This document shows, piece by piece, positions 6,424-52,326 of a stretch of 64,000 bases of DNA. The DNA lies in IMG/VR virus record IMGVR_UViG_3300044633_000899, positions 232,331-296,330 of that record. One strand, 5' to 3'. The position numbers and the translations under genes are program-made. Positions within the stretch are counted from its first letter, which is position 1. Every line of letters begins with the position of its first letter. Under the pieces are notes generated by a model. The model saw nothing but the letters and a program-made list of their open reading frames with translations, made no database searches and was not told where the DNA came from.

Positions 6424-6870
6424 TTAACCGATTACCATTAATTTTGGGTTGTAGTTTCTAACTGGGTTTGCGTCACTTATGTTAAACGTTTTGTCTAACC
6501 ACACTTTTATAATTGATTCTGTTTGTTCTGGTGTTAATTTAAAAAAATTTTCTAACACCATCCAAAATTCAGAATTGTTAATAAACATTTTTTTTGTCAA
6601 TAGATTAAAAACTATCAAATTGTCATTTGGTTTTTTGCGAAACAACATTAAATTAGATGATGTTTTACTTATAACCGTTTCTAAATCGTTATACAAATTT
6701 AAAAACTCAAACGGATTGTTGTCAAACCCTTTTGATATGATTGTGTCAATACTATTAAAATATATTAATTTATTCCACCCCTCATTTTTAATCTTATTTT
6801 GGATGATTTCTTTTTCACTTAAAGATTCATTTAATCTTTTGTACTGACTTTCGGATATAATAATTTTCAT
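6424..6870 (-). CDS. Variable-tail family protein, divergent member
   Basis: MKIIISESQYK leader; PFEFLNLYNDL matches the family motif PMDFLNLFNDL; WLD..FN motif followed by a tail of the same length ending IG. Confidence 0.85.
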   Translation of the reverse strand: MKIIISESQYKRLNESLSEKEIIQNKIKNEGWNKLIYFNSIDTIISKGFDNNPFEFLNLYNDLETVISKTSSNLMLFRKKPNDNLIVFNLLTKKMFINNSEFWMVLENFFKLTPEQTESIIKVWLDKTFNISDANPVRNYNPKLMVIG

Positions 6871-6874
6871 ATTG

Positions 6875-6881
6875 ATAAATA
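6875..6881 (-). promoter_or_regulatory. TATTTAT motif, putative late promoter (representative copy; about 22 copies upstream of genes)
   Basis: Coding-strand TATTTAT at 6401, 6875, 7346, 7832, 9391, 9875, 10346 (minus) and 12149, 13773, 15616, 21049, 23028, 35179, 38178, 41494, 46346, 47862, 48988, 51303, 51990, 52422, 61599 (plus), about 4-40 nt before start codons, mainly of structural genes. Confidence 0.7.
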
Positions 6882-6891
6882 TTCTATTTTT

Positions 6892-7341
6892 TCAATTTGT
6901 AGACCTCATCCAATTGTCATCAACACCAATTATCAATGGTATGACATCCCTTAAATTGTGGGTCAACCATTTCTGTATAAGTTTCTGTATATTAGTGTAG
7001 TTAAGACCAAAGTTACCTTCCAAAACTGACCAAATTTCATTATAATTAATATAAACCTCATCACTTTCTCTATCGTGAATGATAAAATTATGACCTTTTT
7101 TAAAACGATATAATGTCCAATATTCTTCTTCTTCACTCTGAACCGATTCCAGATCATTAAATAAGTTTAAGAAATCCATTGGTTCTTTAATGTCAAAAAT
7201 TTCAAGAGTTTTATCCAAGGACCCAACAATCTTTGTTACAGATTCAAAACCAACCTTTTTTATTAAACCCAATAATTTTTCTTTTAAAGAAACGTTTTCT
7301 TTAATTAGTTTGTATTGACTTTCGGTGATGATAATTTTCAT
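6892..7341 (-). CDS. Variable-tail family protein
   Basis: 149 aa, family core PMDFLNLFNDLESVQSEE; ends in the second repeat copy read as WMRSTN*. Confidence 0.9.
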   Translation of the reverse strand: MKIIITESQYKLIKENVSLKEKLLGLIKKVGFESVTKIVGSLDKTLEIFDIKEPMDFLNLFNDLESVQSEEEEYWTLYRFKKGHNFIIHDRESDEVYINYNEIWSVLEGNFGLNYTNIQKLIQKWLTHNLRDVIPLIIGVDDNWMRSTN

Positions 7342-7377
7342 ATTGATAAATATTCTAATTTTTTTAAATTGTAGATA

Positions 7378-7827
7378 TCATTCAATTTTTCCAATTACTT
7401 CCGTGCTGTTTGCGTAGATTCTGACTCCCCTTAAATTGTAGACCTCACCCAACCATATCTCTATAATTTTCTGTCTTTCAGAAAATTTAAGACCAAATTT
7501 ATCTTCCAATACTGACCAAATTTCATCAGAATTGATATAAACAGAATCATTTTTTCTATCGTAAACCATAAAGTTATGACCTTTTCTATAACGATACAAT
7601 GTCCAATTTTCATCTTCCTCACTCTGAACCGATTCCAAATCATTAAATAAATTTAAGAAATCCATCGGTTCTTTGACATCAAAGATTTCAAATGTTTTAT
7701 CCAAAGATCCAACAATCTTTGTTACAGATTTAAAACCAACTTTTTTTATTAAACCCAACAATTTTTCCTTTAAAGAAACGTTTTCTTTGATTAGTTTGTA
7801 TTGACTTTCGGATATAATAATTTTCAT
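7378..7827 (-). CDS. Variable-tail family protein
   Basis: 149 aa, family core; WLGEVYNLRGVR plus unique tail IYANSTEVIGKIE*. Confidence 0.9.
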   Translation of the reverse strand: MKIIISESQYKLIKENVSLKEKLLGLIKKVGFKSVTKIVGSLDKTFEIFDVKEPMDFLNLFNDLESVQSEEDENWTLYRYRKGHNFMVYDRKNDSVYINSDEIWSVLEDKFGLKFSERQKIIEIWLGEVYNLRGVRIYANSTEVIGKIE

Positions 7828-7862
7828 ATTGATAAATATTCTAATTTTTTAAATTGTAGACC

Positions 7863-9386
7863 TCATCCAGTAAAGAAATCCATTGGCATAAATACAAATT
7901 TAGGTGTGACTCCCCTTAAATTGTAGACCTCATCCAACCACCTCTCTGTAAGTTTTTGTATTTCAGAGTAGTTAAGACCAAATTTATCTTCCAAAACTGA
8001 CCAAATTTCATCATAATTGATATAAACATAATCCTTTTTTCTATCGTAAATCATTATATTATGATCTTTTTTATAACGAAATAATATCCAATTTTCTTTT
8101 TCTTCAGATTGGGTACCTTTCAAATCATTAAATAGATGTAAGAAATCCATCGGTTCTTTAATGTCAAAAATTTTAAATAAATTATCCAAGGATCCAACAA
8201 TTTTTGTTACAGATTCAAAACCAACTTTTTTGATTAAACCCAATAATTTTTCTTTTAAAGATATTGATTCATTTAATGGTTTTTTATTATCCTCTTTTTT
8301 TGTTTTTGAGATATATAAATCATTAACAAATTCCCAATTAACACAATTCCAAAAGTTTTTAATATATTCGTCACGTTTATTTTGATATTTTAAATAATAC
8401 GCGTGTTCCCAGACATCCAACCCCAACAATGGATAACCACCATCTTTAATGATATTCATTAATGGATTATCTTGATTTGGTGTGGACATAATTTTAAGTC
8501 TATTTGTTTTTGTTAAGACAAGCCAAACCCAACCAGAACCAAATCTATCTTTTGCAATTTGGTTAAACTCATCTTTCATCTTTTTTATATTACCATATTG
8601 TTTGGTAATTTTATCAAAAATTTCACCCTTTGGTATTTGTTTCTTTGGTGACAACATCTTCCAAAACAAAGCGTGGTTAAAAGCACCCCCAGCGTTGTTT
8701 CGTACTTTCTCATCAAATTTACTAATTGATTTTATAATATCTTCTAATTCAAGATCTTTATGTTTTTTTTCAGATAAAGCATCATTTAATTTTTTAACAT
8801 AACCTTTATAATGTTTGTTGTAATGAATATCCATCGTTTTTGGATCAACAAATTGTTTTAATGCGGAATATGAATATGGTAATTTTTCAATACCAATTTT
8901 TTTCATTTCCATAATAAACTCTTCTTTGATGTTTTCTTTTTCCGTTAAGAGAATTTGTTCTGAGATAAGATTAATTTTATTAACTATTTTTTCTGAACAC
9001 TCAAAAACCAATTGATTATAATCTGGGTATTCTTTTTCAAACATTTTTATTAATCTACCAGCAAAAGCGTTTGCCTCATCTTCATTTTGACCACCAATAT
9101 CTGGTCCTCGTTCTCTACCTAAAGAAAAACGTTGGTGTGCGTGAACCCACTCGTGAGCCAAGGTTCTCATAATGTCACGATTTAATCTATTTTTTGATAA
9201 AATTTTTAATGTACCGTCCATACTCTGACTACCAGTTGACATTTGACCCATTTTATCACCCAAAAACAAAATTGTTAAATCTTGATTAACAGGATAATGA
9301 TTACCTAAAAACTTGATAAAATCATTGTACATTTTTTTATCGTTAGCATCAAGTCCAGAATCATTATGTTTAATTGTGATTTTCAT
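7863..9386 (-). CDS. sodA: Tripartite fusion: HExxH zincin-like domain + Mn-type (Fe/Mn family) superoxide dismutase + variable-tail family domain
   Basis: TLAHEWVH...EDEANAFAG (aa ~75-110); SOD motifs LPYSYSAL, HYNKH, NNAGGAFNH, FGSGWVWL, NQDNP, DVWEHAYY (GG and NQD point to the Mn type); the last ~135 aa are a variable-tail domain. Confidence 0.9.
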   Translation of the reverse strand: MKITIKHNDSGLDANDKKMYNDFIKFLGNHYPVNQDLTILFLGDKMGQMSTGSQSMDGTLKILSKNRLNRDIMRTLAHEWVHAHQRFSLGRERGPDIGGQNEDEANAFAGRLIKMFEKEYPDYNQLVFECSEKIVNKINLISEQILLTEKENIKEEFIMEMKKIGIEKLPYSYSALKQFVDPKTMDIHYNKHYKGYVKKLNDALSEKKHKDLELEDIIKSISKFDEKVRNNAGGAFNHALFWKMLSPKKQIPKGEIFDKITKQYGNIKKMKDEFNQIAKDRFGSGWVWLVLTKTNRLKIMSTPNQDNPLMNIIKDGGYPLLGLDVWEHAYYLKYQNKRDEYIKNFWNCVNWEFVNDLYISKTKKEDNKKPLNESISLKEKLLGLIKKVGFESVTKIVGSLDNLFKIFDIKEPMDFLHLFNDLKGTQSEEKENWILFRYKKDHNIMIYDRKKDYVYINYDEIWSVLEDKFGLNYSEIQKLTERWLDEVYNLRGVTPKFVFMPMDFFTG

Positions 9387-9423
9387 AATTATAAATATCT
9401 AATGATTGTAAAATATAGTTTTA

Positions 9424-9870
9424 TTAAATCATAGATATCATCCAATCCCAATTCTGAAAGTTCTCAAAAACCCAAGTCGGTCTGGTTCTCTTTAAATTGT
9501 AGGTATCATCCAACCAATCCTTAATAAGGTTACTTATATCATAATAGTTTGTTAAATGTTTCTGTTCTAAAACTGACCAAATGTCACCATAATTGATATA
9601 AACAGCATCACTTCTTCTGTCGTGAATCATAATGTTATAACCTTTTTTATAACGATATAATGTCCAAGATGGTCTTTCCTCACTCTGAATTACATCCAAT
9701 TCATTAAATAAATTTAAGAAATCCATCGGTTCTTTGATATCCAAAATTTCAAGTGTTTTATCCAAGGATCCAACAATTTTTGTTGTGGACTTAAAACCAA
9801 TTTTTTTAACTAAACCTAGTAATTTTTCTTTAATCGATTTATATTGATTTTCGGTTATAATAATTTTCAT
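9424..9870 (-). CDS. Variable-tail family protein
   Basis: 148 aa, family core; WLDDTYNLKRTR plus unique tail ending WMISMI*. Confidence 0.9.
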   Translation of the reverse strand: MKIIITENQYKSIKEKLLGLVKKIGFKSTTKIVGSLDKTLEILDIKEPMDFLNLFNELDVIQSEERPSWTLYRYKKGYNIMIHDRRSDAVYINYGDIWSVLEQKHLTNYYDISNLIKDWLDDTYNLKRTRPTWVFENFQNWDWMISMI

Positions 9871-9891
9871 ATTGATAAATATTTCACTTTT

Positions 9892-10341
9892 TTAAATTGT
9901 GGTGTTGTGTATACCAACAATATGGTTATACGTTGTGATTCCCTTTAAATCATAGACCTCATCCAACCACGTTTCTACAAGGGTTGTAATGTCACCAAAG
10001 TTAATATCAAAATTATCTTCCAAAATTGTCCATATTTCGTCATAATTAATGAAAACATATTTAATTTTTCTATCGTAAATCATAAAATTATGACCTTTTT
10101 TATATCTATACAATACCCAATTTGGTTCTTCTTCACTCTGAACAACATCCAAATCATTAAATAAGTTCAAGAAATCCATTGGTTCTTTAATATCAAAGAT
10201 ATCAAAAGTTTTATCCAAAGACCCAACAACTCTTATCGTTGATTCAAATCCAACCTTTTTGATTAAACTCAATAATTTTTCTTTTAAAGAAACGTTTTCT
10301 TTGATTAGTTTGTATTGACTTTCGGTTATTATTATTCGCAT
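9892..10341 (-). CDS. Variable-tail family protein
   Basis: 149 aa, family core; WLDEVYDLKGIT plus unique tail TYNHIVGIHNTTI*. Confidence 0.9.
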   Translation of the reverse strand: MRIIITESQYKLIKENVSLKEKLLSLIKKVGFESTIRVVGSLDKTFDIFDIKEPMDFLNLFNDLDVVQSEEEPNWVLYRYKKGHNFMIYDRKIKYVFINYDEIWTILEDNFDINFGDITTLVETWLDEVYDLKGITTYNHIVGIHNTTI

Positions 10342-10352
10342 AATAATAAATA

Positions 10353-12110
10353 TTACATTTTTTGATTAATTGATTTTAAAATTTCTTCAACGGTATCACC
10401 AGGGTCTGAACTAACATCACCCATAACAGTACCAATTATTTTTTTCTTATTGTTTAATATGTCATAAATAGCACCCTCAATTGTGTTGATAAACAAAGGA
10501 TAATAAACCAATACATTATTTTTTTGACCATATCTGTACGCCCTATCTTCGGCTTGTGCGTGTTCCGCTGGGACAAAAGATAAGTCATTCATTATTACCG
10601 CTTCAGCCTTTGTTAGTGTTAAACCAACCCCCGCCGCTTTTAGATTTCCAACAAATACTTTTATCTTGTCGTTTTCTTGAAACTGGTCAACAGCATATTG
10701 TCTTTGTGTTTTATTACAACTACCATCCAAATAGACAGATTGTTTACCGAAGTGATTATGAATCATTTGTAACGTTTCCGTAAAGTTTGTAAAAATAATA
10801 ACTTTCTTATCTTGATCAATTATATTTTGGGCAAATTCAATTGTTTCTTTAACCTTTTCATTAGCAATCAATTTTCTAATTTGCATAAGTTTTGAAAATT
10901 GTACCGTTAACGACGACGACCCTTCTTCTTTATCCAACCACACATAATATTCACCCATAAGGTCTTTATACTCTTTTGATGTTGTTTTTAAATAAATTGG
11001 TGTTATTATCTTATCTGGTAAATCTAAAACCTCATCTTTTAACCTACGAAGAATTTGACCCGAAGTTCTTTCCCTTAGTTCTTCCAAGTTTGATGCACCA
11101 TTAACATTCCAAACCTTTCTATTGCCAGCCCTAAATTGATAACCTTCACAATAACGAATAGCATATGCCATCCAGTTTTGTGCAACAGGACTTTCAATCA
11201 AGTTTAATAAATTATAATAATTGATTGGTCTGTTTGTCATTGGTGTTCCCGTTAATAACCACAAATATTTGGCCTTTTTTGTAAAACTATTAATTATTTT
11301 TGTTCTGGCCGCCTGACTATTACTTACCATATGTGCCTCATCCAATATGATCAAATCAAAATTAATTTGACCTATAACCGAATCGTGGGGGTTTTTAATG
11401 TCATAAAAATTTTTTAAGATGTCATAATTAACAATTACAATGTCGTGTTCCGTTGAGAATTTTTTACCTTCCGCAATAAAAACAGATTTATCTGAATATA
11501 TTGCAATCTCTCGTTGCCAATTTATTTTAAGAGACGCGGGACAAACAACTAAAATCTTTTTCGCTTTGGTCTCAAGTGCTGCAATAATTGTGGAGCATGA
11601 CTTGCCAACGCCCATGTCATCCGCCAAAATAAACCTTTTTGACCCCACCAATTTCTCAATCGCTTCTTTTTGATGTGGTAATGGGGGTCTGTTGTCATAC
11701 TTTGAGTAATCAACCTCAACCTTTTCAATTGTATGTGATTTTATTAATGATGATTTTGGAATCCAAAATTCGGATAATTGATCCTTCTCAAAGAACTTAC
11801 CCCAAATATGGTAGGACTTATCTTTTTCAACTAATAATTTCTCAATGTAAATTTGTTTTGGTGTTTCAAGAAAATACCTTTCTTTAGCGAATTTTTCAGC
11901 AAAATACGTATCAAGGTCAACCCACTTTCTAGCGACTTTTGGGTTCGTACTATAATAATTTACAATATATTCCGCTTGAGTTCTAGTTGGGTAAAACTTT
12001 TTATTTGTTTGTTTTTTGACTTTCATATATAATATATGATTGTTCGCACCATCATATGTGTCCAATAATTCTAAAGCCTTATGTTCTATTAGTTGTTTTT
12101 GATTTTCCAA
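10353..12110 (-). CDS. SNF2-family (SWI2/SNF2) helicase/ATPase
   Basis: ILADDMGVGKS, LIILDEAH, LTGTP, QAEDRAYRYGQ motifs. Confidence 0.92.
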   Translation of the reverse strand: MENQKQLIEHKALELLDTYDGANNHILYMKVKKQTNKKFYPTRTQAEYIVNYYSTNPKVARKWVDLDTYFAEKFAKERYFLETPKQIYIEKLLVEKDKSYHIWGKFFEKDQLSEFWIPKSSLIKSHTIEKVEVDYSKYDNRPPLPHQKEAIEKLVGSKRFILADDMGVGKSCSTIIAALETKAKKILVVCPASLKINWQREIAIYSDKSVFIAEGKKFSTEHDIVIVNYDILKNFYDIKNPHDSVIGQINFDLIILDEAHMVSNSQAARTKIINSFTKKAKYLWLLTGTPMTNRPINYYNLLNLIESPVAQNWMAYAIRYCEGYQFRAGNRKVWNVNGASNLEELRERTSGQILRRLKDEVLDLPDKIITPIYLKTTSKEYKDLMGEYYVWLDKEEGSSSLTVQFSKLMQIRKLIANEKVKETIEFAQNIIDQDKKVIIFTNFTETLQMIHNHFGKQSVYLDGSCNKTQRQYAVDQFQENDKIKVFVGNLKAAGVGLTLTKAEAVIMNDLSFVPAEHAQAEDRAYRYGQKNNVLVYYPLFINTIEGAIYDILNNKKKIIGTVMGDVSSDPGDTVEEILKSINQKM

Positions 12111-12174
12111 AATTACCCGTTAATAAATAAAAATAATTATAAATTTGATATTTATAAATACAAAACAATTTAAA

Positions 12175-12690
12175 ATGAATACACCAAGAGTTCCAATAAC
12201 AAGATTAGGTAAGTTTTTTGGCTCAAATGATTTTGATTTAGAGGTCTCACTTTCCGAGGAATGGTTGATTGGCGATATGAATTACACTTGTGTGTTGTAC
12301 CGTGTTGATAAAACCAAAACCAAAACTGACGATGTTTACGGTGAAACGGTACCTGATGGTATTAAGTTTTTACCCCCAGTTGAGTTTAACGCACAGGTTA
12401 CAATTGCGTCACCAGAAAATAAACTTATGGGTTCAACAAAATTAGATCAACTTGAACCTGGTAATATAACTGTTTCGGTATTTTTAAAGACTTTGGACGA
12501 TCTTAATATTGATATTGAGTTTGGTGATTATATTGGGTATTACGACACAGAAAGTTTTGTAAGATATTATACCGTTGTTAACGATGGTCGTATAACGTCT
12601 GATACAAAACATACATATAAAGGATATCGTCCTTTTTATAGAACAATAACTGGAGCACCTGTTGGTCCTAACGAATTTAGGGGTTTATAA
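12175..12690 (+). CDS. Head-closure/neck protein (T4 gp14-like)
   Basis: YRVD...DDVYGE pattern; the ATG at 12175 is preferred because the TTG at 12145 lies upstream of the TATTTAT motif. Confidence 0.55.
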   Translation: MNTPRVPITRLGKFFGSNDFDLEVSLSEEWLIGDMNYTCVLYRVDKTKTKTDDVYGETVPDGIKFLPPVEFNAQVTIASPENKLMGSTKLDQLEPGNITVSVFLKTLDDLNIDIEFGDYIGYYDTESFVRYYTVVNDGRITSDTKHTYKGYRPFYRTITGAPVGPNEFRGL

Positions 12691-12693
12691 TTT

Positions 12694-13734: not shown

Positions 13735-13794
13735 TATTTTTTATTAAAAAATCGTTTTTTTTTTTTTTGATATATTTATAATAAAAAACATATT

Positions 13795-14211
13795 ATGAAA
13801 AAAATTTTAAGACTAACAGAAAACGATTTAACCCGTATCGTTAAACGAGTTATTCGTGAACAAGATGGTGAATCACATAATAAAATATCAGATGAAGATT
13901 TTGATTCTTTTTTAGATGTTTTATCACAATATGAATCAGGTGACATTACTTGGGATGACTTTTTAGAAAAAAGTGAAGCTATTGGTTCAAAATATGTGGT
14001 TGGACCAAAACCAAAATCAAACGTTTTTATTGGGTTGTCTAATCAAGTTGAAGAGTTTAATCAAAAGTTGTCAAACCATTATGATGACCTAATTAGAAAT
14101 TCTACGTTATTTGGTAATATTTATGATGCTTACGAATCTGGTGAATTAACTAACGATGAAGGGTTCACTCTATTGAAAATGATCCGTACGGTAGAATATA
14201 ACGACCGTTAA
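13795..14211 (+). CDS. Acidic protein with LTExDLxRIVxRVIxE leader, putative internal head protein
   Basis: MKKILRLTENDLTRIVKRVIREQ N-terminus shared with 47881 and 52024; own TATTTAT motif at 13773. Confidence 0.75.
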   Translation: MKKILRLTENDLTRIVKRVIREQDGESHNKISDEDFDSFLDVLSQYESGDITWDDFLEKSEAIGSKYVVGPKPKSNVFIGLSNQVEEFNQKLSNHYDDLIRNSTLFGNIYDAYESGELTNDEGFTLLKMIRTVEYNDR

Positions 14212-14326
14212 TGTTTAAAATCGTCCGATAAAGGTGATCCTATTGAAGTAATTAAAGAAGTTTCAGAACGAAGTGAAAGGGGTTTACAGTAAATTTTTAT
14301 AAAGTAATCACTAATGTTATCATATT

Positions 14327-15536: not shown

Positions 15537-15656
15537 AAGTAGAAAAAAGGTAGAAAAAAAACCTACCTATCTATAAATACTTTTAAGTATGTAAAGTTTT
15601 TGATAAAAACGTGAATATTTATTAATAAAATAAAATTATAAATAAAATTAAAATCT

Positions 15657-35428: not shown

Positions 35429-36100
35429 ATGTCTATTGATAAAAAAATATTAGAAGAAATTGCAAGGTTTAATAATATAAATAATTATATTTTAGAACAA
35501 GAAGATCCGAATATGATACCACCTGCGGATCCTAACGCAATGCCGCCTGCTGACCCGAATATGATGCCACCGGCCGACCCTAACGCGATGCCACCTGCTG
35601 ACCCAAATGCCGCACCACCAGCCGATCCGAACGCACCACCAGCAGCACCAACACCAATTGATGTTGAAGCAGACAAAGACGTTGAAGTTATTGGTGATGA
35701 TGAAAATGAAGAATTAGAAATAACTGATCTTGTTGATTCACAAAAAAGTATTGGTGAGAAACAAGACGAATATTTTGATAATTTATTTGCACAAATAAAA
35801 GGTCTTGAAGAAAAATTATCGGCAATGGATCAATTAGTTTCAAAGATAGATAACTTAGAAACAAACATTGAGAAAATGAGACCTAAAACACCACAAGAAA
35901 AACTTGAATTAAGAAGTTTGGATTCTGGACCATTTAATCAAAAACTATCAGATTTTTTCACAGACAAACAAGAAGACTTTGAAAAAACTGGAAAAGAATA
36001 TGTATTAACAACAGATGATGTTGAACAATATTCTGGAAACCAAATTAAAGACTCATTCACCGATTACGAAGACAATGAGGAAGACACTGAAATGATGTAA
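35429..36100 (+). CDS. Acidic coiled-coil protein with PPADPN repeats, possible scaffold/internal head protein
   Basis: Five PPADPN[AM]x units after a leader ending YILE|Q; acidic coiled-coil C-terminal half. Confidence 0.6.
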   Translation: MSIDKKILEEIARFNNINNYILEQEDPNMIPPADPNAMPPADPNMMPPADPNAMPPADPNAAPPADPNAPPAAPTPIDVEADKDVEVIGDDENEELEITDLVDSQKSIGEKQDEYFDNLFAQIKGLEEKLSAMDQLVSKIDNLETNIEKMRPKTPQEKLELRSLDSGPFNQKLSDFFTDKQEDFEKTGKEYVLTTDDVEQYSGNQIKDSFTDYEDNEEDTEMM

Positions 36101-38190: not shown

Positions 38191-38352
38191 ATGGGAAGAG
38201 TTAAAGTTGATACAGATAAAAAAAAGAAAAGTATTTCGGTTGCAATGGAACCAGAGGTTCTTGATTATATTAGAAACAAACATATCAATCTTTCTTCCCT
38301 AGTTAATAAACTATTGAAAGATTATATTAAAAATGGAAACAAAGATTTGTAA
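38191..38352 (+). CDS. 53-aa ribbon-helix-helix-like protein (absent from ORF track)
   Basis: MGRVKVDTDKKKKSISVAMEPEVLDYIRNKHINLSSLVNKLLKDYIKNGNKDL*; TATTTAT at 38178; overlaps the HNH start by 20 nt. Confidence 0.75.
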   Translation: MGRVKVDTDKKKKSISVAMEPEVLDYIRNKHINLSSLVNKLLKDYIKNGNKDL

Positions 38353-39004
38353 CAAGTGTAAAATTGAAAAAGAACTAATAGAATTTTATAAATCAAAATC
38401 AAGTAAAGATGGTTATAATGGGTGGTGTAAAATTTGCCTTAATGAAAAAAATAATAAATGGCGTGAGAATAATAGGGATATTGTAAATCAGTGTTCTAAA
38501 AATTGGTATCAAAATAATAAAGATAAAAAATCTGAATATTTTGAAAAATATCGTTTAGAAACACCAGAAAAACTTAAAGAGACAGGAAGGAAGTATCGTG
38601 AAAAAAACAAAGAGATTATAAAACAAAAAAAGAAAATTTATAATGAAAATTATAAACAAAAAAGAAACGAACTTCGTAGAGAAAAATTAAAAACGGATAT
38701 TTTATTCAAACTCGTGAACAGCGTCAGATCTCGGTTAAGAAAATATCTAAAAACAAAAAACATAACCAAAAAAAACACAACTTTTGAAATTGTAGGTTGT
38801 ACACCCCAGGAATTAAAAGAACATTTAGAAAAACAATTTGTTGACGGAATGGGGTGGGAAAACAGATTTGAGTGGCATATTGATCATATTATACCATTAT
38901 CATCTGCTAAAACTGAGGAAGAATTATATCAGTTATGTCATTATACTAACCTACAACCACTTTGGGCTATTGACAATCTCAAAAAAAGTAACAATATTTT
39001 ATAA
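38333..39004 (+). CDS. Free-standing HNH homing endonuclease with N-terminal Cys4 zinc finger
   Basis: KICNKC...WCKIC; basic helical linker; WHIDHIIPLS...HYTNLQPLWAIDNLKKSN. Confidence 0.88.
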   Translation: METKICNKCKIEKELIEFYKSKSSKDGYNGWCKICLNEKNNKWRENNRDIVNQCSKNWYQNNKDKKSEYFEKYRLETPEKLKETGRKYREKNKEIIKQKKKIYNENYKQKRNELRREKLKTDILFKLVNSVRSRLRKYLKTKNITKKNTTFEIVGCTPQELKEHLEKQFVDGMGWENRFEWHIDHIIPLSSAKTEEELYQLCHYTNLQPLWAIDNLKKSNNIL

Positions 39005-39014
39005 AAAAAAACAA

Positions 39015-40028
39015 ATGAACGATAAATTAAAAGTAATTTCACTATTTTCCGGATACGGAACACAAGAATTGGCATTAAAGTATATTGGTGTGGATTATGA
39101 TGTTATTGCAAACTGTGATAACTTTAAGGCGGCCAACGAATGTTATGACGCACTACACACAACACAAAATGGTAACTTGGGTGATATTAGACAAGTAAAT
39201 GAGAACACTTTTCCCAATTCTGATCTATTAACATACTCTTTTCCTTGTCAGTCAATTTCTATTTCCGGTAAACAAGAAGGAATTAAAGAAGGTACAAGAA
39301 GTGGGTTATTGTATGAGGTTGAAAGACTTTTGTCTGTTAATAGACCAAAGGTTTTATTAATGGAAAACGTTAAGAACCTAGTTTCAAAGAACCACTATGA
39401 AGCGTTTAAAAAACACATTTATTTCTTACGAGGACTTGGGTATTCATCTTACTGGAGATTATTAAATGGTGCTGATTTCGGTTGCCCCCAGAATAGAGAG
39501 AGGGTTTTTATGATTTCAGTATTACACGGTAATCCAAATGAGGTTAAAGAAAAGATGATGAATGTTGATCGTTATAAAAAACCGAGAGTACCAATGTTGT
39601 CATTTATTGATAGTAATATTGATGAGTCTTTGTTTGTTGATTGTCCGTTCACCTTACACGAAGCAAAACAAAATACTGTTTGTAAATTGGTTGCAAGGAG
39701 AGATGATATTAACTATGATCAAATGAGACGTATTTATTCGTTGGATGCTTGTTCACCTTGTTTAACAACCAGTGGGTCACCACAAATTATGACACCAGAT
39801 GATAGGGTACGAACACTTACTGCTAGAGAGGGTTATAGATTTATGGGTGTTAAAGATTCTGATATTGACGTTATGTTAACAACATCGTTATCAACTAGGG
39901 CTCACATTTCATTGGCCGGTAATTCTATTTGTGTTCCAGTTATGGAAGCGATATTTAGTGAGTTTTTTGCGGATTACATTGTAGGTTCTACGGTGTCAAA
40001 TCCCCTTAATGAAACAACAAATGTCTAA
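39015..40028 (+). CDS. DNA (cytosine-5)-methyltransferase
   Basis: LFSGYG (I), FPCQ (IV), MENV (VI), QNRERVF (VIII), LAGNS (X); the ATG at 39015 is preferred over the TTG at 38838 inside the HNH gene. Confidence 0.93.
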   Translation: MNDKLKVISLFSGYGTQELALKYIGVDYDVIANCDNFKAANECYDALHTTQNGNLGDIRQVNENTFPNSDLLTYSFPCQSISISGKQEGIKEGTRSGLLYEVERLLSVNRPKVLLMENVKNLVSKNHYEAFKKHIYFLRGLGYSSYWRLLNGADFGCPQNRERVFMISVLHGNPNEVKEKMMNVDRYKKPRVPMLSFIDSNIDESLFVDCPFTLHEAKQNTVCKLVARRDDINYDQMRRIYSLDACSPCLTTSGSPQIMTPDDRVRTLTAREGYRFMGVKDSDIDVMLTTSLSTRAHISLAGNSICVPVMEAIFSEFFADYIVGSTVSNPLNETTNV

Positions 40029-42923: not shown

Positions 42924-43871
42924 ATGGAAAAAATATTAGTAAATAACCCCAACCGATTTGTGATTTTCCCAATTGAACATAATGACATTTGGGATTATTA
43001 TAAACAACATCAAGCGGCTTTCTGGACGGCAGAAGAAGTTGATTTGACAAATGACATTAGAGACTGGGAAGGCTTAACTGAAAATGAAAAATATTTCATT
43101 AAAAATGTGTTATCATTTTTTGCAGCGTCTGATGGGATTGTTAATGAGAATTTAGCGGAAAACTTTTATAGAGAGGTACAATACCCTGAAGCAAAATTCT
43201 TTTATGGATTTCAGTTGGCAATGGAAAACATTCATTCATTAATGTATTCATTGTTAATTGATACGTACATTACAGATCAAAAAGAAAAGGATGAATGTTT
43301 TAATGCAATTGATAGATTACCAGCGGTACAAAAAAAGGCAAAATGGGCTTTAGAATGGATTGAAAACGCGTCGTTCGCGGAACGTTTAGTTGCGTTTGCT
43401 GCAGTTGAAGGTATATTCTTCTCAGGTTCGTTCTGTTCTATCTTCTGGTTAAAATCTAGGGGTATTATGCAGGGGTTATGTAATGCTAACACATTGATTT
43501 TTAAAGATGAAAATCTACATTGTGATTTTGCTATCCATTTGTTGAATAATCACTTAGAAAATAAACCATCAGAAGACCGAATTAAAGAAATACTATTATC
43601 GGCACTTGAGATTGAAAAAGAATTTATAACAGAATCATTATCGGTATCGTTAATTGGGATGAACTCAAACTTAATGAAACAATACCTTGAGTTTGTTGTT
43701 GACGGATTACTACTTAAATTTGGTTGTAGTAAACACTTCAATGTTGAACAACCGTTTAAATTTATGGAACAAATTGCTCTTGAAACAAAAGGTAATTTCT
43801 TTGAATCAAGAACAATGGAATATCAAAAAGCCAAATTAAATGAAACAATAACATTCACGGAGGATTTTTAA
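42924..43871 (+). CDS. nrdB: Class Ia ribonucleotide reductase beta subunit
   Basis: [41 protein letters not shown]. Confidence 0.96.
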
Positions 43872-43881
43872 AATATAATTT

Positions 43882-46299: not shown

Positions 46300-46304
46300 A
46301 ATAT

Positions 46305-46333
46305 AAAAAACCACTAATTAGTGGTTTTTTTTT
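46305..46333. terminator. Palindromic (bidirectional-type) terminator
   Basis: AAAAAACCACTAATTAGTGGTTTTTT is a perfect palindrome. Confidence 0.75.
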
Positions 46334-46364
46334 GTTATAACGATATATTTATAAATAAAAAATT

Positions 46365-47051
46365 ATGAAATTAATTATTACAGAAGAAGAAAAAAATAGA
46401 ATACTTGGTATGCACCAATCGGCAACCTCAAGACAGTATTTAAAGGAAAATACGGGATATGATAGTTCTGGTGGTGCGCCAATAAATGATGGGTCTGGTG
46501 CTTATAATTATTTTATGGGTTTAATAAAAAAAACTGGAAAATTAGATAAAAACACTGCTTGGCTCGGTAAAACGACATATTGGATTGTAACACAACCTTG
46601 GCAAGAAGGAACCGGTACCATTCCTGGAAATTTTGCTTATTTAACAATGAGAGGAATTGTGAAGAGAAATGGTCTTTATTTTGACGTTTCAAATGATAAT
46701 GAATCTATCACAACATTCAAGTTAGGAAAAACAAATGCTGATTCATTTTTGATTGCCGAAACAGCAAATGAAGTTGAAAATTGGTTACCAAACACACAAA
46801 CATTAAAATCACTAGGTGCGGGAACTCCAGGTGGAAATATGGGACTTGTAGGTGGTTTAACAAATTTTAAATCAATGGTTAAAAATTTACCTAATAAGGA
46901 CCTTTTATTAAAAAATTATGTTAATGCGTCAGCTCAACCTAATTTTAAAAATGCAGTACCACAAGATCAGATGGATTTATACACAACATCCGCAACATCC
47001 GTTAAACCAGCAACATCCGTTAAACCAGCAACACCAACAAAACCACAATAA
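46365..47051 (+). CDS. Protein with ITEEEK..RILGMH leader and C-terminal ATPTKP tag
   Basis: Leader shared with 47058; ends SATSVKPATSVKPATPTKPQ*. Confidence 0.75.
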   Translation: MKLIITEEEKNRILGMHQSATSRQYLKENTGYDSSGGAPINDGSGAYNYFMGLIKKTGKLDKNTAWLGKTTYWIVTQPWQEGTGTIPGNFAYLTMRGIVKRNGLYFDVSNDNESITTFKLGKTNADSFLIAETANEVENWLPNTQTLKSLGAGTPGGNMGLVGGLTNFKSMVKNLPNKDLLLKNYVNASAQPNFKNAVPQDQMDLYTTSATSVKPATSVKPATPTKPQ

Positions 47052-47057
47052 AAAATA

Positions 47058-47846
47058 ATGAAAAAATTCTTAATAACAGAAGAAGAAAAATCAAGAATAC
47101 TTGGTATGCACAAAAGTGCAATTGCTAGAGAATTTTTAGGTGAACAAGGAACTCCAGCAGTACCAACAGGTACACAACCAGCACAACAACCAGCAACTCC
47201 AGTAGTCGCGCCGGTAGCCGCAGGAACACAACCAGCACAACAACCGAATCCAACATTGGATCGTTTAAATCAACTTATGGGTACGTCATTACCTCAAAAC
47301 GCAAGAAACGAAGACGTAATTAATGCGTATAAAACATATTTGGGTACAGATATTAATGGTATGGTTGGTAAAACGATTGTTGTGTTTAAAAACGCAAACA
47401 CAGCAAACCCAACAATTTTAGGTTCTACAATTGCTTCTGAATTTATTATTGGATCATTATACTTTAATGGTACTAATACAACCTGGGTTTGGAAAACACC
47501 AATTAAAACTAACTTTAATGAAAGTGACCAAGAGAATAATTACACCGTTACAGATGGCGTTAACGCAATAAGAAAGGGTGTAAGTTTATTCACATTACAA
47601 GGTGGTGCAGTTACAGACTTACAAAACATTGGTTTAGTAAAACAAAGACTAACACCACTTGTTGGTACTTTTGGTATGGTAGCAAAAAATCAGACACCAT
47701 ACTCAAGTTGGGTAACTAAAGCGAACCCACAAAATACAGACACAGGATTTTTTACTATAACACCATTTATTGCCGGCACTGGATCACAATTATCATCAAC
47801 GATTACACCGATTGCGGCAACACCAGCAACACCAACAAAACCATAA
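47058..47846 (+). CDS. Protein with ITEEEK..RILGMH leader, Pro/Gln-rich linker and C-terminal ATPTKP tag
   Basis: Leader shared with 46365; GTQPAQQP twice; ends ATPATPTKP*. Confidence 0.75.
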   Translation: MKKFLITEEEKSRILGMHKSAIAREFLGEQGTPAVPTGTQPAQQPATPVVAPVAAGTQPAQQPNPTLDRLNQLMGTSLPQNARNEDVINAYKTYLGTDINGMVGKTIVVFKNANTANPTILGSTIASEFIIGSLYFNGTNTTWVWKTPIKTNFNESDQENNYTVTDGVNAIRKGVSLFTLQGGAVTDLQNIGLVKQRLTPLVGTFGMVAKNQTPYSSWVTKANPQNTDTGFFTITPFIAGTGSQLSSTITPIAATPATPTKP

Positions 47847-47880
47847 AAATAAACAATAATATATTTATAAATAAAAAACA

Positions 47881-48375
47881 ATGAAAAAAATAATTAGATT
47901 AACAGAATCAGATCTTACAAGAATTGTAAGACGTGTGATTAAAGAACAAGGTGTTAGAACTCTTGTACCATTAACAATTTCGGTACCATTTAGAAAAGAC
48001 TCAACAGGTCAAATGGTTTTTGACCCAAATTATCAAGTTAAAATTTTTGCAAAGAATGGTGAAGGGACAGAACAAACTAGTTTGGAAAACTACACAAAAA
48101 TTGTAGGTCTCCAAATAACAAGTGAGTATTTTGTGAATCCAGTTACTAAAAAAGATGCTGCAGGAAATATCGTAGGTTCTTTCTCAATCGGAAATCAAAA
48201 AAACCTTGGAACTTACTTGAAAAACCAAGTAGGAAAAACAACACCTTTTTCGGATCAAAGTATTTCAATAACTATAGGTCAAGTACCTTCTGGTTCAACA
48301 ATAGTATACGGTGGTGGAACAAAATTTGTAATGTACGACACTGGTGCTAAAGTAGCAACACCAACAAAACCATAA
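47881..48375 (+). CDS. Protein with LTExDLxRIV leader and C-terminal ATPTKP tag
   Basis: MKKIIRLTESDLTRIVRRVIKEQ; ends KVATPTKP*. Confidence 0.75.
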   Translation: MKKIIRLTESDLTRIVRRVIKEQGVRTLVPLTISVPFRKDSTGQMVFDPNYQVKIFAKNGEGTEQTSLENYTKIVGLQITSEYFVNPVTKKDAAGNIVGSFSIGNQKNLGTYLKNQVGKTTPFSDQSISITIGQVPSGSTIVYGGGTKFVMYDTGAKVATPTKP

Positions 48376-48379
48376 TAAA

Positions 48380-48405
48380 AAAAACCCATCTTTTGATGGG
48401 TTTTT
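48380..48405. terminator. Bidirectional terminator between convergent genes
   Basis: AAAAACCCATC-tttt-GATGGGTTTTT. Confidence 0.85.
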
Positions 48406-48409
48406 CATT

Positions 48410-48826
48410 TTAAGAACCTTTTACAATTATAAAGTCTGAGAATTTGGTTAACTCAATAAAATTATCTGTGTTTGAAAACCAAGTTACTTGTTCGTTATCA
48501 ATATCGGTATTAATAACCATCCAGATGTTATATTCGTCAATTAAAAACTTAACTAAGATAACACCATCTTTATCATCAAAGGTAATTTCACCCTCACTCA
48601 AAACAATGTTGTTTTTGATGTGTGTGAATGACTTGTTTGTTAAATCAATGTTATATGTACTATTAACTTTTCTATATTCATAAACTAAACTGTCGTCATT
48701 AATAAGATTAAAAACACTGGTGTCATAACCATATGTGTCAATAACACCTGACACCTCAATTTTAATAACTTGTGAATTAACAGAAGTTGTAAATAACAGA
48801 CATAAAATAAAAATAATTGTTTTCAT
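48410..48826 (-). CDS. Exported beta-rich protein with Sec signal peptide
   Basis: MKTIIFILCLLFTTSVNS|Q signal peptide with Gln at +1; TATCTTTG (-7 type) motif upstream at 48856-48863. Confidence 0.7.
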   Translation of the reverse strand: MKTIIFILCLLFTTSVNSQVIKIEVSGVIDTYGYDTSVFNLINDDSLVYEYRKVNSTYNIDLTNKSFTHIKNNIVLSEGEITFDDKDGVILVKFLIDEYNIWMVINTDIDNEQVTWFSNTDNFIELTKFSDFIIVKGS

Positions 48827-48999
48827 AATGTTTGGGTTTTAAATTATTAATACATCAAAGATATATATATTACTAAAACAAACGTAAATTTTAACATTTT
48901 TTAACAATTTGTCTTTTATATAAATATTTGAGAATGTTCCAGAACACAACAACATCTTTTTTCTTTATATAAAACAACCAACCATTATATTTATTAAAT

Positions 49000-49458
49000 A
49001 TGGCAAATGGTGTAACATATGGGATAAATTTTCCTTTTAGAGATTCTTTTAATGGACGTTATTTAGATTTATCTGACACTACGGATGAAGAAATTAGAAC
49101 TGATTTGGTGCATTTATTATTATCCAGAAAAGGAACAAGATATTTTTTACCAGACTTTGGTACGAGATTATATGAATATATTTTTGAACCATTAGACGGG
49201 CCAACGTTTGCTGATGTTGAGTCTGAAATTAGGGATTCTGTTGAAAAATACATACCTGGGATTCAGATTTTAAATATTGAAATTAAAGATGCTTCTGAGG
49301 GTGAAGAAAATAAAGGTACATTTATTAATTCACAAGGTGAACGAGAATATACGGTACAAGGTATTGGTGAAAAAGAACATACGGCAAGAATAAAAATAAA
49401 TTATAGGGTAACAAATCAAGCGTTTGAAAGTACAGATTTTGTTATTATTAATATTTAA
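49000..49458 (+). CDS. Baseplate wedge protein gp25-like (GPW/gp25)
   Basis: LLLSRKGTRYFLPDFGTRLYEYIFEP...IRDSVEKYIP. Confidence 0.88.
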   Translation: MANGVTYGINFPFRDSFNGRYLDLSDTTDEEIRTDLVHLLLSRKGTRYFLPDFGTRLYEYIFEPLDGPTFADVESEIRDSVEKYIPGIQILNIEIKDASEGEENKGTFINSQGEREYTVQGIGEKEHTARIKINYRVTNQAFESTDFVIINI

Positions 49459-49463
49459 TAATT

Positions 49464-51302
49464 ATGGCAGAGAAAAAGATTTCATATACGGCTAGGGATT
49501 TCCAAACGATTAGAACGGAATTAATAAATTTTACACGAACGTATTATCCAGATTTAATCCAGAACTTTAATGATGCTGGTGTTTTTTCTGTTTTAATGGA
49601 TTTGAACGCGGCGGTAACTGATAATCTACAATTCCAAATAGATAGAAGTATTCAAGAAACGGTATTACAATACGCACAACAAAAATCATCAATTTATAAC
49701 ATAGCAAGAACATACGGATTAAAAATCCCTGGTCAACGACCTTCTGTTGCGTTAACTGATTTCTCAATTACGGTACCAGCGTTTGGTGATAAAGAAGATT
49801 TAAGATATTGTGGTATATTAAGACGAGGATCGCAAGTATCTGGTGCTGGACAACCATTTGAAACTGTTTATGATATTGATTTTGCATCACCATTAAATGG
49901 TGAGGGTTCACCAAATAGACTTAAAATACCAAATTTTGATTCAAACGGTAAAATTTTAAATTATACAATAACAAAAAGAGAGGTTGTTGTTAATGGGACA
50001 ACAAAGGTATTTAAGAGAGTTATTACACCAAATGATGTAAAACCTTATTTTGAATTATTCTTACCAGAAAAAAATGTTTTGGGAATAACAAGTGTTTTAT
50101 TAAAAGATGGTACACAATATACAACAATACCTGAACCACAAGAATTTCTTGGGTTGGATAACAGATGGTATGAAGTTAAAGCGTTGGCCGAAGATAGAGT
50201 GTTCATTGAGGACCCAACAAAGGTATCAGACCAACCTGGTGTTAAAGTAGGTAAATATATCACAACTAACACTAAATTCATTAGTGAATACACACCAGAA
50301 GGTTATCTAAAAATGACATTTGGTGGTGGTAATGTTTCGGCTGAAGAACAATTAAGAGAATTTACAAGAACTGGTAATTCATTTGATTTAAACAAATACT
50401 CAAACAATCTAGCACTAGGTGCTGCGTTAAAGTCAAACTCTACTTTATTTATTCAATATAGAATTGGTGGTGGACAATCAACAAACCTTGGATCAAATGT
50501 GATTACACAGATTGGTACGGTTTCGTTTTTTGTTAATGGACCATCAGAAACGATTAATAAAAGTGTTATTAATACATTAAGATGTAATAACGTGACAGCA
50601 GCAATAGGAGGGGCGAACGCACCAACAACTGAAGACGTAAGACAAATGGTTTCATTTAATTTTGCGGCACAAAACAGAGCGGTAACAATTAATGATTATG
50701 AATCAATAATAAAAACAATGCCATCACAATTTGGTGCACCAGCAAAAGTTGCGATAACTGAAGAAAACAATAAGATAAAAGTTAAAATGTTATCTTATGA
50801 TAGTAATGGTAATTTAACTGATACAATATCAAACACACTAAAAAGTAATTTATCAAATTATTTATCAAACTATAGAATGATAAATGATTATATCTCAATT
50901 GAGAGTGCAAACCCAATTGATCTATCTGTTGATGTTGATGTTGTATTAGACGCGACACAAAACCAAGGTGCTATCATATCAAAATTAATTAATATTGTAA
51001 CAACATTCTTTAGTCCAACAAATAGACAATTAGGACAAAACGTTAACGTATCTGAATTAAGAAGAATTATCCAGAACGAAAATGGAATTGTGAGTATTTC
51101 GGATTTAAGGTTTTTTAATAAGGTTGGGGGTCAGTATTCTTCATATCAGACATCACAAAGGTATTCCGATTTATCAACAAAACAAATTGAATTAATTAAT
51201 GATACGATATTTGCGGAACCAACACAGACTTATCAAGTTAGGTTTCCGAATAAGGATATTAATGTTAGGGTAATAAACTTAAAAACTGTGAATTTTTCAT
51301 AA
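49464..51302 (+). CDS. Baseplate wedge protein gp6/J-like
   Basis: RDFQTIR, FIQYRIGGGQSTN, AAIGGANA, QNRAVTINDY. Confidence 0.88.
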   Translation: MAEKKISYTARDFQTIRTELINFTRTYYPDLIQNFNDAGVFSVLMDLNAAVTDNLQFQIDRSIQETVLQYAQQKSSIYNIARTYGLKIPGQRPSVALTDFSITVPAFGDKEDLRYCGILRRGSQVSGAGQPFETVYDIDFASPLNGEGSPNRLKIPNFDSNGKILNYTITKREVVVNGTTKVFKRVITPNDVKPYFELFLPEKNVLGITSVLLKDGTQYTTIPEPQEFLGLDNRWYEVKALAEDRVFIEDPTKVSDQPGVKVGKYITTNTKFISEYTPEGYLKMTFGGGNVSAEEQLREFTRTGNSFDLNKYSNNLALGAALKSNSTLFIQYRIGGGQSTNLGSNVITQIGTVSFFVNGPSETINKSVINTLRCNNVTAAIGGANAPTTEDVRQMVSFNFAAQNRAVTINDYESIIKTMPSQFGAPAKVAITEENNKIKVKMLSYDSNGNLTDTISNTLKSNLSNYLSNYRMINDYISIESANPIDLSVDVDVVLDATQNQGAIISKLINIVTTFFSPTNRQLGQNVNVSELRRIIQNENGIVSISDLRFFNKVGGQYSSYQTSQRYSDLSTKQIELINDTIFAEPTQTYQVRFPNKDINVRVINLKTVNFS

Positions 51303-51313
51303 TATTTATTGAT

Positions 51314-51832
51314 ATGAAAATAATTATAACCGAAAATCAATACAAGTTAATTAAAGAAAACATTTCTTTAAAAGAAAAATTAAAGGACTTAATCAAAAAG
51401 GTTGGTTTTGAATCAATGGTAAGAGTTGTTGGATCCTTGGATAAAACGTTTGAAATCTTTGATGTCAAAGAACCGATGGATTTCTTAAATTTATTTAATG
51501 ATTTGGAATCGGTTCAGAGTGAAGAACGTGAAGATTGGACGTTATATCGTTATAAAAAAGGACATAATTTTATAGTTTACAATAGAAAAAATGATTATGT
51601 TCATATCAATTATGATGAAATTTGGTCAGTTTTAGAAGACAATTTTGGACTTAACTACTCTGAAACACAGAAACTTACAAAGAGATGGTTGGATGAGGTC
51701 TACAATTTAAGGGGAGTCACACCTTATATTTTTGACTTAACATCAACAGGGTTAAGGTTGGATGAGGTCTACAATTTAAGGGGAGTCACACCTCGCGAAA
51801 ATATATCGTTCGATATGTCTCGGATTGGATGA
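51314..51832 (+). CDS. Variable-tail family protein with duplicated tail unit
   Basis: 172 aa; family core; ...WLDEVYNLRGVT-PYIFDLTSTGLR-LDEVYNLRGVT-PRENISFDMSR-IG*. Confidence 0.9.
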   Translation: MKIIITENQYKLIKENISLKEKLKDLIKKVGFESMVRVVGSLDKTFEIFDVKEPMDFLNLFNDLESVQSEEREDWTLYRYKKGHNFIVYNRKNDYVHINYDEIWSVLEDNFGLNYSETQKLTKRWLDEVYNLRGVTPYIFDLTSTGLRLDEVYNLRGVTPRENISFDMSRIG

Positions 51833-51856
51833 GGTCTACAATTTAAGGGGAGTCAC
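51687..51856 (+). repeat. CRISPR-like repeat-spacer mini-array inside and beyond a CDS (3 x 34 bp; 35- and 33-nt unrelated spacers)
   Basis: GGTTGGATGAGGTCTACAATTTAAGGGGAGTCAC at 51687-51720 and 51756-51789 (identical) and 51823-51856 (1 mismatch); no cas genes in the window. Confidence 0.92.
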
Positions 51857-52023
51857 CGTCTATTGTAATATTTCCACAAAAAAGACATTTTTGTGAAACA
51901 ACACCAATCTTTTACTTTTTCACAAACAAGATTATTCTTTGAAAATAGGAAATAAACTTAAAAAGTGTAAATTTTTCATAACATCAATATATTTATATTG
52001 TAAATAATAAATAAAAAAAAACG

Positions 52024-52326
52024 ATGAAAAAAACAGTTAGATTAACAGAAAGAGATTTAACAAGAATTGTTAAAAGAGTAATTAAAGAAGGTAGTGAAAA
52101 CATTGAAGATTTACGACACGAAAGATTAGACCTACTAAAAAGAATTAAAAGATTTGCAAACAAATCTTATAATTTAGAAAACACGGTAGATATTGATTTA
52201 GAAAACACGGTAGATATGGATGATGACGATATGTATGGTGTTGGTGAATGTGTTGAAACTGCAGACGAACTGCTCAAAGCCTTGAAAAGAATTGGTGAAG
52301 ATCACGATATTAACGATTTTGAATAA
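52024..52326 (+). CDS. Acidic protein with LTExDLxRIV leader
   Basis: MKKTVRLTERDLTRIVKRVIKEG; internal 24-bp duplication (LENTVDID/LENTVDMD). Confidence 0.75.
   Translation: MKKTVRLTERDLTRIVKRVIKEGSENIEDLRHERLDLLKRIKRFANKSYNLENTVDIDLENTVDMDDDDMYGVGECVETADELLKALKRIGEDHDINDFE

Follow-up and report, generated by a model that had tools for sequence, protein, structure and literature searches.

The stretch of DNA analysed here, a window of 64,000 nucleotides (nt) with a G+C content of ~30%, is the end of a 296,330-bp contig of the Joint Genome Institute (JGI) that is also held in IMG/VR (record IMGVR_UViG_3300044633_000899). The source contig comes from lake water and was seen again in more than 20 lake metagenomes. 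Its genes of T4 type include those for a tail sheath, a Phage_T4_gp13 neck protein, gp25- and gp6-like baseplate proteins and a hub protein, as well as a family B DNA polymerase (polB), a gp32-like single-stranded DNA-binding protein (SSB), UvsX, a DnaB-like helicase and a ribonucleotide reductase. On account of the sheath, Phage_T4_gp13, gp25/gp6-like baseplate, UvsX, SSB and polB genes, we identify the phage by gene content as a lake-water jumbo myovirus and a distant relative of T4; a megablast search with the sheath region as query matched no GenBank phage. Its host probably belongs to the Flavobacteriia, as hinted by near-identical contigs that encode SprB-repeat proteins downstream and by a phage fragment binned together with a Flavobacterium metagenome-assembled genome (MAG). 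Here, we focus on twelve genes of the window whose products begin with conserved N-terminal leaders ending in [IL]-x-E, which may be signals for packaging into the phage head.

The initial annotation had sorted these leaders into types A, B and C plus one further leader, called type D here, and all twelve open reading frames (ORFs) were found with the starts it had given them. Type A (MKIIIT/SES/NQYK…) opens the genes starting at 6870, 7341, 7827, 9870 and 10341 on the minus strand and at 51314 on the plus strand; type B (MKK..RLTExDLTRIVxRVIxE) those at 13795, 47881 and 52024 (plus strand); type C (MK..ITEEEKxRILGMH…LxE) those at 46365 and 47058 (plus strand); and type D (MSIDKKILEEIARF…ILE) the gene at 35429 (plus strand). 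The type A genes end, in addition, in repeats that resemble those of CRISPR (short palindromic repeats, clustered and regularly interspaced) and are treated further below. The leader genes, and one related gene without a leader, are as follows.

6424-6870, minus strand: divergent type A paralog of 148 amino acids (aa), with leader MKIIISESQYKRLNE and a degenerate 3′ repeat
6892-7341, minus strand: type A protein of 149 aa, modelled with AlphaFold2 (AF2), whose end WMRSTN* is read from a truncated repeat copy at 6892-6912
7378-7827, minus strand: type A protein of 149 aa; at its 3′ end a repeat (7418-7453), a 32-nt spacer and a truncated repeat (7364-7384)
7863-9386, minus strand: fusion protein of 507 aa with an N-terminal HExxH (zincin-like) region, a complete Fe/Mn superoxide dismutase (SOD) and a leaderless type A domain; at its 3′ end an exact repeat (7903-7938), a 32-nt spacer and a truncated repeat (7849-7869)
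9424-9870, minus strand: type A protein of 148 aa with a 6-residue deletion in the leader helix and a degenerate repeat at 9492-9512
9892-10341, minus strand: type A protein of 149 aa beginning MRIIITESQYK, with a repeat at 9945-9965 that has 2 mismatches
13795-14211, plus strand: acidic protein of 138 aa with a type B leader (residues 1-22)
35429-36100, plus strand: protein with a type D leader, PPADPN repeats and an acidic domain
46365-47051, plus strand: basic protein of 228 aa with a type C leader (residues 1-29, …SRQYLKE) and a C-terminal …TPTKPQ tail
47058-47846, plus strand: basic protein of 262 aa with a type C leader and a C-terminal …TPTKP tail
47881-48375, plus strand: basic protein of 164 aa, predicted to be a beta-sandwich, with a type B leader and a …TPTKP tail
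51314-51832, plus strand: type A protein of 172 aa, whose frame crosses the first two repeats of an array and stops in the third
52024-52326, plus strand: acidic protein of 100 aa with a type B leader

The leader pattern occurs in the window far above chance. At least two [IL]xE motifs lie within residues 3-36 of every one of the twelve leader proteins, compared with 8 of the 35 other ORFs of the window, and a generic regular expression for the leader matches 12 times in the window versus not once in 1.05 Mb from 80 other T4-like phage loci. Beyond the leader, the sequences had been described as unrelated outside the type A family; this stands for the type B, C and D payloads as compared by BLASTP (all E > 0.1), except that the proteins at 46365, 47058 and 47881 have the …TPTKP tail in common. 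The type A proteins are indeed homologous over their full length. Their set of six is right as far as leader-bearing members go, to which the C-terminus of the 507-aa fusion (7863-9386, minus strand) adds a seventh, leaderless domain; the domain junction of this protein, …KPLNESISLKEKLL…, still retains an L-N-E motif. Payloads in the window are mostly acidic, with basic ones confined to the trio at 46-48 kb.

Known families offer little guidance as to what these proteins do. Searches of all leader proteins against Pfam and PHROGs matched only the SOD domains of the 507-aa fusion, a Protein Atlas search with one type A protein returned only unnamed viral clusters, and Foldseek against the PDB found nothing significant for the type A model or the type B payload model (best E for the payload 0.02). 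Profiles of type A, the payload and leader B found no match when run against the PDB; a ribbon-helix-helix protein, an identity considered for the strand-helix leader, was not among the results either. Relatives of the 47058 gene are present in RNA contigs of a metatranscriptome, whose reads revealed no transcript ends.

The tails of the 46-48 kb trio are a separate observation. Endings in …(A/T)TPTKP occur at 47021-47051, 47817-47846 and 48346-48375, and in many metagenome relatives (homologues P0001, P0003, P0019, P0020 and P0030), and they may represent a second portable signal. That they are DNA repeats was ruled out, given that a relative keeps the peptide with synonymous changes.

The leader genes nearly all lie behind the heptamer TATTTAT, as first reported: it is found within 45 nt upstream of 10 of the 12. 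The longer octamer ATATTTAT occurs 28 times in the window, versus 16.9 expected, and mostly directly upstream of ORF starts, including the following sites.

51302-51309, plus strand: an example of ATATTTAT, 4 nt ahead of the ATG of the 51314 gene
6875-6882, 7346-7353, 7832-7839, 9875-9882, 10346-10353, 13772-13779, 46345-46352, 47861-47868 and 51989-51996: ATATTTAT before other leader genes
6401-6408, 15615-15622 and 48987-48994: ATATTTAT before the neck, sheath and baseplate genes, respectively

On a sister contig (L017, see below), the octamer also lies upstream of head-module genes, namely those for the protease, the scaffold and the core. We infer that TATTTAT is a late or morphogenetic promoter. 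Since ATATTTAT stands only 4 nt from the ATG at type A genes (6871-6882, 7342-7353, 7828-7839, 9871-9882 and 51302-51313), the type A mRNAs may be leaderless or nearly so.

The N-terminal leaders had been proposed to be modular and swappable, and comparison of homologues bears this out. On relatives of the 47881 payload the leader is B, C (P0003, from a syntenic 161-kb relative) or a third one (P0004 and P0005), and chimeras of leaders B and C occur. The type A leader, in turn, precedes seven or more payloads that are not related to the type A domain, and one of these comes from the source genome. Two further types, MK.LIKKILKEE… and MKNTLAENLLRFGVKNLSESD…, precede small proteins (metagenome contigs L137 and L138; P0004 and P0005), with one MK.LIKKILKEE… leader preceding a type A-like domain. 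At least six sequence types of leader are known. The type D gene at 35429 is kept at the same position in the 161-kb relative, where its leader ends in ITE.

A survey with a hidden Markov model had been suggested as a way to list the cargo. A 30-position leader B profile matches 7,410 protein clusters at E ≤ 1e-3 and 630 at 1e-10 (counted as cluster representatives at 50% identity), and in nearly all of the best 150 matches it aligns with residues 1-28. The idea of several insertion sites also holds up: leader genes sit in variable loci, as cassettes present or absent between close strains. For example, the type B gene 52024-52326 is wholly absent from the near-identical contig L007, and some lake populations (runs X1 and X3) join 51154/51271 to 51933/51951, bypassing the type A gene and its array (51272-51950). 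On a 50-kb contig from another phage (L004), a stretch of 20 kb contains 13 or more genes with leader B as well as A- and C-like leaders, and an M23 peptidase encoded on this contig has a C-type leader.

Selection acts on the leader peptide rather than on the DNA. Eight residues of leader B (L7, T8, E9, D11, L12, R14, I15 and E22) are invariant in 13 copies, although their codons vary (CTA, TTA or CTT for leucine; AGA, CGT, CGA or CGG for arginine) and 29% of identical residues are encoded by different codons. Moreover, conservation stops abruptly after I20-x-E22 in 114 leader B proteins, 95-100% of which keep this motif; together, the varying codons, the invariant residues and the sharp end argue for selection at the peptide level. 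In the AF2 model of the 47881 protein, leader residues 1-27 form an isolated helix with a predicted local distance difference test (pLDDT) of 45-63, the beta-sandwich payload exceeds 90 and the …TPTKP tail is disordered. Structural separation of leader and payload is what the model gives for leader B, whereas the type A leader is predicted to continue into the first helix of its domain.

A Pfam scan of large ORFs on array-bearing sister contigs led to the head module, which was located on L017, L119 and L120 (same lineage) and on L122 (source contig). From first to last, its genes are those for terminase, a T4-type portal that contains an intein, a protein of 238 aa, a type A protein (the gene carrying its array), a protein of 155 aa, Peptidase_S77, a protein of 71 aa, an acidic scaffold of 510 aa and the capsid protein Gp23. 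The protease (Peptidase_S77, E 4e-22 in L017, L119 and L120) is 32% identical to T4 gp21 (E 1e-20), including the LNHP and SSRG(V/L)GS segments, and on the source contig itself lie the Gp23 capsid gene and the last part of the scaffold gene. In an alignment with T4 gp23, the capsid propeptide …SFLINE|ATGEG stands opposite …SFLTE|AEIGG, the Glu-Ala columns being invariant; cleavage of T4 gp23 at this …LTE|A position is established. As read here, the T4 internal proteins have MKTYQEFIAE|A and …TITE|A. To judge from these alignments, the lineage has the machinery needed for capsid targeting, namely a T4 gp21-type S77 protease and a conserved I-x-E|A capsid site. Two other routes to the head module were less productive: the capsid protein of Flavobacterium phage immuto, used as bait, recovered only immuto-like phages, and a walk upstream on the source contig met only fibre-like genes. 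An intein that bears an HNH endonuclease-like insert interrupts the portal gene (L017:1772-4735).

Prohead-targeting propeptides are, in our view, the best explanation of the leaders, though we put the likelihood slightly short of even. The leader module, of 15-35 residues, consists of a short hydrophobic strand (MK-h-h-x-h), T/S-E and an amphipathic helix running to [IL]-x-E. It would dock the nascent protein onto the scaffolding core during head assembly and then be removed after the Glu by the T4 gp21-type S77 protease, leaving varied payloads in the capsid that would be ejected with the DNA and might serve in anti-defence. This cargo reading, as originally put forward, gains from the modularity of the leaders, selection on the peptide, the detached leader B, the variable loci, the shared upstream motif, and the protease with its capsid site; it loses from the lack of sequence relationship to the T4 signal and from the tie of type A to arrays.

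Several observations weigh against it. The leaders have no significant similarity to MKTYQEFIAE of T4, with only MK and [IL]xE recognizable in common by eye, and they exceed the 10-residue T4 signal in length and, by far, in conservation. The [IL]xE motif is frequent in Lys/Glu/Ile-rich helices, as its early occurrence in the 8 of 35 other ORFs illustrates. Near their head module, which is of the same kind, the 80 other T4-like phages have no such leaders, tblastn with the type B protein 47881 and with the type A protein 51314 gave no match among GenBank phages, and the protease gene was read on L017, L119 and L120, not on the examined part of the source contig. The payloads themselves are awkward: their number for leader B (thousands of clusters, and 13 genes in 20 kb of one contig) is large, many are strongly acidic (isoelectric point 4-5), which is odd for cargo of a DNA-filled head, and so are the hydrophobic, membrane-like stretches of some leader B proteins and the one QueF-like and one GNAT protein among 60 scanned. 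A second, internal copy of the leader is present in 13 of the best 145 leader B matches. Finally, type A is mainly a paralogous family linked to CRISPR-like arrays, natural leaderless type A genes occur, and the predicted continuity of its leader with the first domain helix (pLDDT ~75) sits badly with a removable propeptide.

The arrays of the type A genes consist of a 36-nt repeat and unique spacers of 29-33 nt. The repeat emerged from an alignment of DNA made because type A homologues have odd, recurrent C-terminal endings (WMRSTI, …IG). In frame 1 it encodes the conserved end of the type A domain, its last 12 codons being LDEVYNLRGVTP, and translating the following repeat copy in the two remaining frames gives the endings WMRSTI* and …IG*. 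The type A subfamily thereby has a second identity, with its last 12 codons as the first repeat of a CRISPR-like array and its genes on the leader side of that array. The three-repeat array of the window is

51688-51859, plus strand: CRISPR-like array with three copies of the 36-nt repeat, of which the third is degenerate at its 3′ end, and with spacers of 33 and 31 nt, followed by an AT-rich hairpin

and the window also contains two units of repeat, spacer and truncated repeat (from 7903-7938 and 7418-7453, minus strand) and decayed remnants. A sister array (L020:6737-7101) has 6 exact repeats, and 33 unique spacers between full repeats were found over all loci compared.

Like CRISPR arrays, which are recognized by at least three near-identical repeats of 23-55 nt and unique spacers of similar length, these loci have both features, and they also have polarized spacer turnover, with gene-proximal spacers differing and distal ones shared (L014 versus L034 and L011; L017 versus L019), and a degenerate terminal repeat (3-5 mismatches). 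As spacer lengths follow no multiple-of-three pattern and so ignore the reading frame, we take the arrays to be an element acting at the level of DNA or RNA, not a protein repeat. The type A genes look coding all the same, because divergence is greatest at codon position 3, then 1, then 2, and because they are fused to SOD and other domains. At least 12 copies are present in the examined parts of the genome, and read depth over type A is about tenfold that of the flanks.

For the type A genes only, these properties lend themselves to another reading, to which we give an even chance: the genes would be leader-side partners of phage CRISPR-like arrays (an anti-CRISPR, a partner of the repeat RNA or a decoy for spacer integration) rather than ordinary cargo, and their hypervariable C-termini would be translated spacers. 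The exact repeat in up to 6 copies with unique spacers, the coincidence of the first repeat with the codons LDEVYNLRGVTP and of the two endings with the next repeat in other frames, the turnover near the gene, the degenerate last repeat, the spacer lengths and the raised depth all speak for such a partnership, for which phage mini-arrays and repeat mimics, often beside anti-CRISPR genes, provide precedents (PMC10651486, PMC6858448). On the other hand, unequal recombination between paralogs could stack such units without Cas1-Cas2, and the expected company of an array was not encountered. No cas family was among the families listed from Pfam and PADLOC for 66 large ORFs of the lineage, under half of the 296-kb genome having been read. 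No array with the same repeat was found in 185,579 species genomes (GTDB), where the only match was the phage fragment binned with the Flavobacterium MAG, and a scan of JGI metagenome contigs for a host array yielded none and two more phage contigs. The repeat matches no Rfam repeat family, either at the gathering threshold or with E values as high as 10, has no hairpin and folds less well than shuffled sequence. None of 47 spacers has a protospacer in 1.74 Mb of phage DNA with up to ~6 mismatches allowed, the two spacers tested against IMG/VR had no target there, and GenBank phages gave no match. Nothing convincing resembled a tracrRNA-like (trans-activating CRISPR RNA) anti-repeat in the sequence examined. 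A resemblance to Bacteroidota type VI-B repeats was considered and dropped, as the absence of a hairpin speaks against it.

Taken further, the phage might own an adaptive repeat-spacer system of a new layout, cas-less or with cas genes not yet seen, although we consider this doubtful. In it, each of at least a dozen dispersed mini-arrays would start from the last 12 codons for a fast-evolving protein of 130 residues with a prohead-targeting leader; the protein, co-injected with the DNA, could work with or against repeat RNAs, and the arrays could serve in inter-phage warfare or as decoys for host spacer integration. As far as can be told, no array has been described in which a multi-copy gene supplies the first repeat with its coding end.

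For the leaders in general, the strongest competitor of prohead targeting is that they are uncleaved docking or oligomerization helices, which would tether small domains to a shared structure such as the outer capsid, the tail surface or an intracellular assembly. Here, the best-modelled payload, a beta-sandwich with a flexible Pro-rich tail, is of a domain kind that phages often display outside, even if its fold match is not significant (best E 0.02); the internal leader copies lie between domains like linkers, the extreme conservation of the leader fits a fixed binding partner, and an M23 peptidase bears a C-type leader. However, conservation stops sharply at [IL]xE, which is the presumed specificity of the phage's own protease, and we hold this explanation to be unlikely.

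Less probable again, with a small chance in our estimation, is that the leaders are regulatory tags on late small proteins (a degron, a signal for a chaperone or protease, or an enhancer of translation start in a host without Shine-Dalgarno pairing), unrelated to the virion. The 4-nt distance between ATATTTAT and the type A ATG, suggestive of leaderless or near-leaderless mRNAs, the invariant A-rich first codons (AAA AAA ATT) and a gene for a ClpB-like AAA+ protein near leader genes in L003 would suit such tags, but conservation spans 22-35 residues with synonymous variation, internal copies can have no part in translation start, and the same payload is served by several leader types. Least probable of all is that cassette shuffling left the shared N-termini behind as by-products, with promoter-plus-start segments acting as recombination sites and the peptide having no role: leaders do lie exactly at cassette borders behind a common promoter-like motif, metagenome contigs break or switch at leader sequences, where depth spikes, and entire cassettes are gained or lost between strains, yet the eight residues that stay invariant despite differing codons (29% of identical residues) already weaken this reading, as do internal copies far from promoters, retention of the peptide in 7,410 clusters and a type D leader that changes from ILE to ITE with its motif retained.

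Other genes of the region and of the source genome are recorded here for completeness. Between the leader genes and the baseplate genes, on the opposite strand, lies a gene for a 138-aa protein with a classical signal peptide (MKTIIFILCLLFTTSVNSQ…; 48410-48826, minus strand); a 138-aa gene occupies the same position in L001, and a similar signal-peptide protein of 146 aa does so in L003. An endonuclease VII/HNH-like ORF (38333-39004 of the window) overlaps a TTG-started ORF of 396 aa (38838-40028), the real start of which is probably further downstream. Elsewhere in the source genome are three tandem paralogous genes, at least one of them for a C5 cytosine methyltransferase, and a gene for a sigma-70-like factor (L015:4660-7258 and 3493-4293; 19.7-34.4 kb of the source contig).

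The leader family itself is real, much larger than first seen and unstudied; a search of 8.4 million papers and preprints for five leader motifs as literal strings returned none. If prohead targeting is the right explanation and the leaders are tickets to the capsid, a 22-residue profile alone would list thousands of candidate injected proteins of uncultivated phages, amounting to a direct catalogue of factors for host takeover in the first minute and for anti-defence, and the leader would offer a portable tag for loading proteins into T4-like heads. Should both the leader code and the repeat-spacer system prove true, they would form a new phage counter-defence toolkit. The coupling of a leader family to arrays within coding sequence also raises the questions of how CRISPR-like arrays arise, whom virus-borne ones serve and whether a packaged protein partners them.

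The closest known counterpart is found in T4, whose internal proteins combine a capsid-targeting role with hypervariable, diverse payloads (PMC3012670). In common with IPI, IPII, IPIII and Alt, the leaders described here form an N-terminal signal that runs from MK to (I/L)-x-E; their payloads are likewise unrelated, change fast and lie in variable loci, and the phage has a T4-type S77 protease and an (I/L)-x-E|A capsid site. Unlike the T4 signals of 10-19 residues, however, the leaders extend over 15-35 residues in at least six sequence types, are much more conserved, have two [IL]xE motifs, do not resemble MKTYQEFIAE significantly and are sometimes repeated inside the protein. Their payload families number in the thousands, many of them acidic.

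Giant phages (phiKZ, 201phi2-1 and SPN3US) are reported to have x-x-E propeptides cut by a protease related to T4 gp21 (PMC5694885, PMC7411985, PMC10052503). Their ejection and inner-body proteins are similar to the present case in the large genome, the many head proteins, the paralog families and the processing of propeptides. We know of no single portable leader common to unrelated proteins in phiKZ-type phages, whose sites are S/A/G-x-E. The phage studied here differs also in being T4-like. Another parallel concerns encapsulin cargo peptides and the Dar system of phage P1, in which a portable short peptide or N-terminal region sends unrelated proteins into a shell of the HK97 fold. Encapsulin signals are usually C-terminal and uncleaved, and P1 needs the helpers DarA and Hdf.

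The arrays, for their part, recall the mini-CRISPR arrays and solitary repeat units (RNA anti-CRISPRs) known from viruses (PMC6858448, PMC10651486). They have in common with virus mini-arrays the short units of repeat, spacer and, in some cases, partial repeat, the apparent lack of cas genes and a position close behind a promoter (PMC6858448, PMC10651486). They differ in that no host array, target or known repeat family was found for them here, that each genome has at least a dozen units, and that a multi-copy protein gene contains the first repeat within its coding end.

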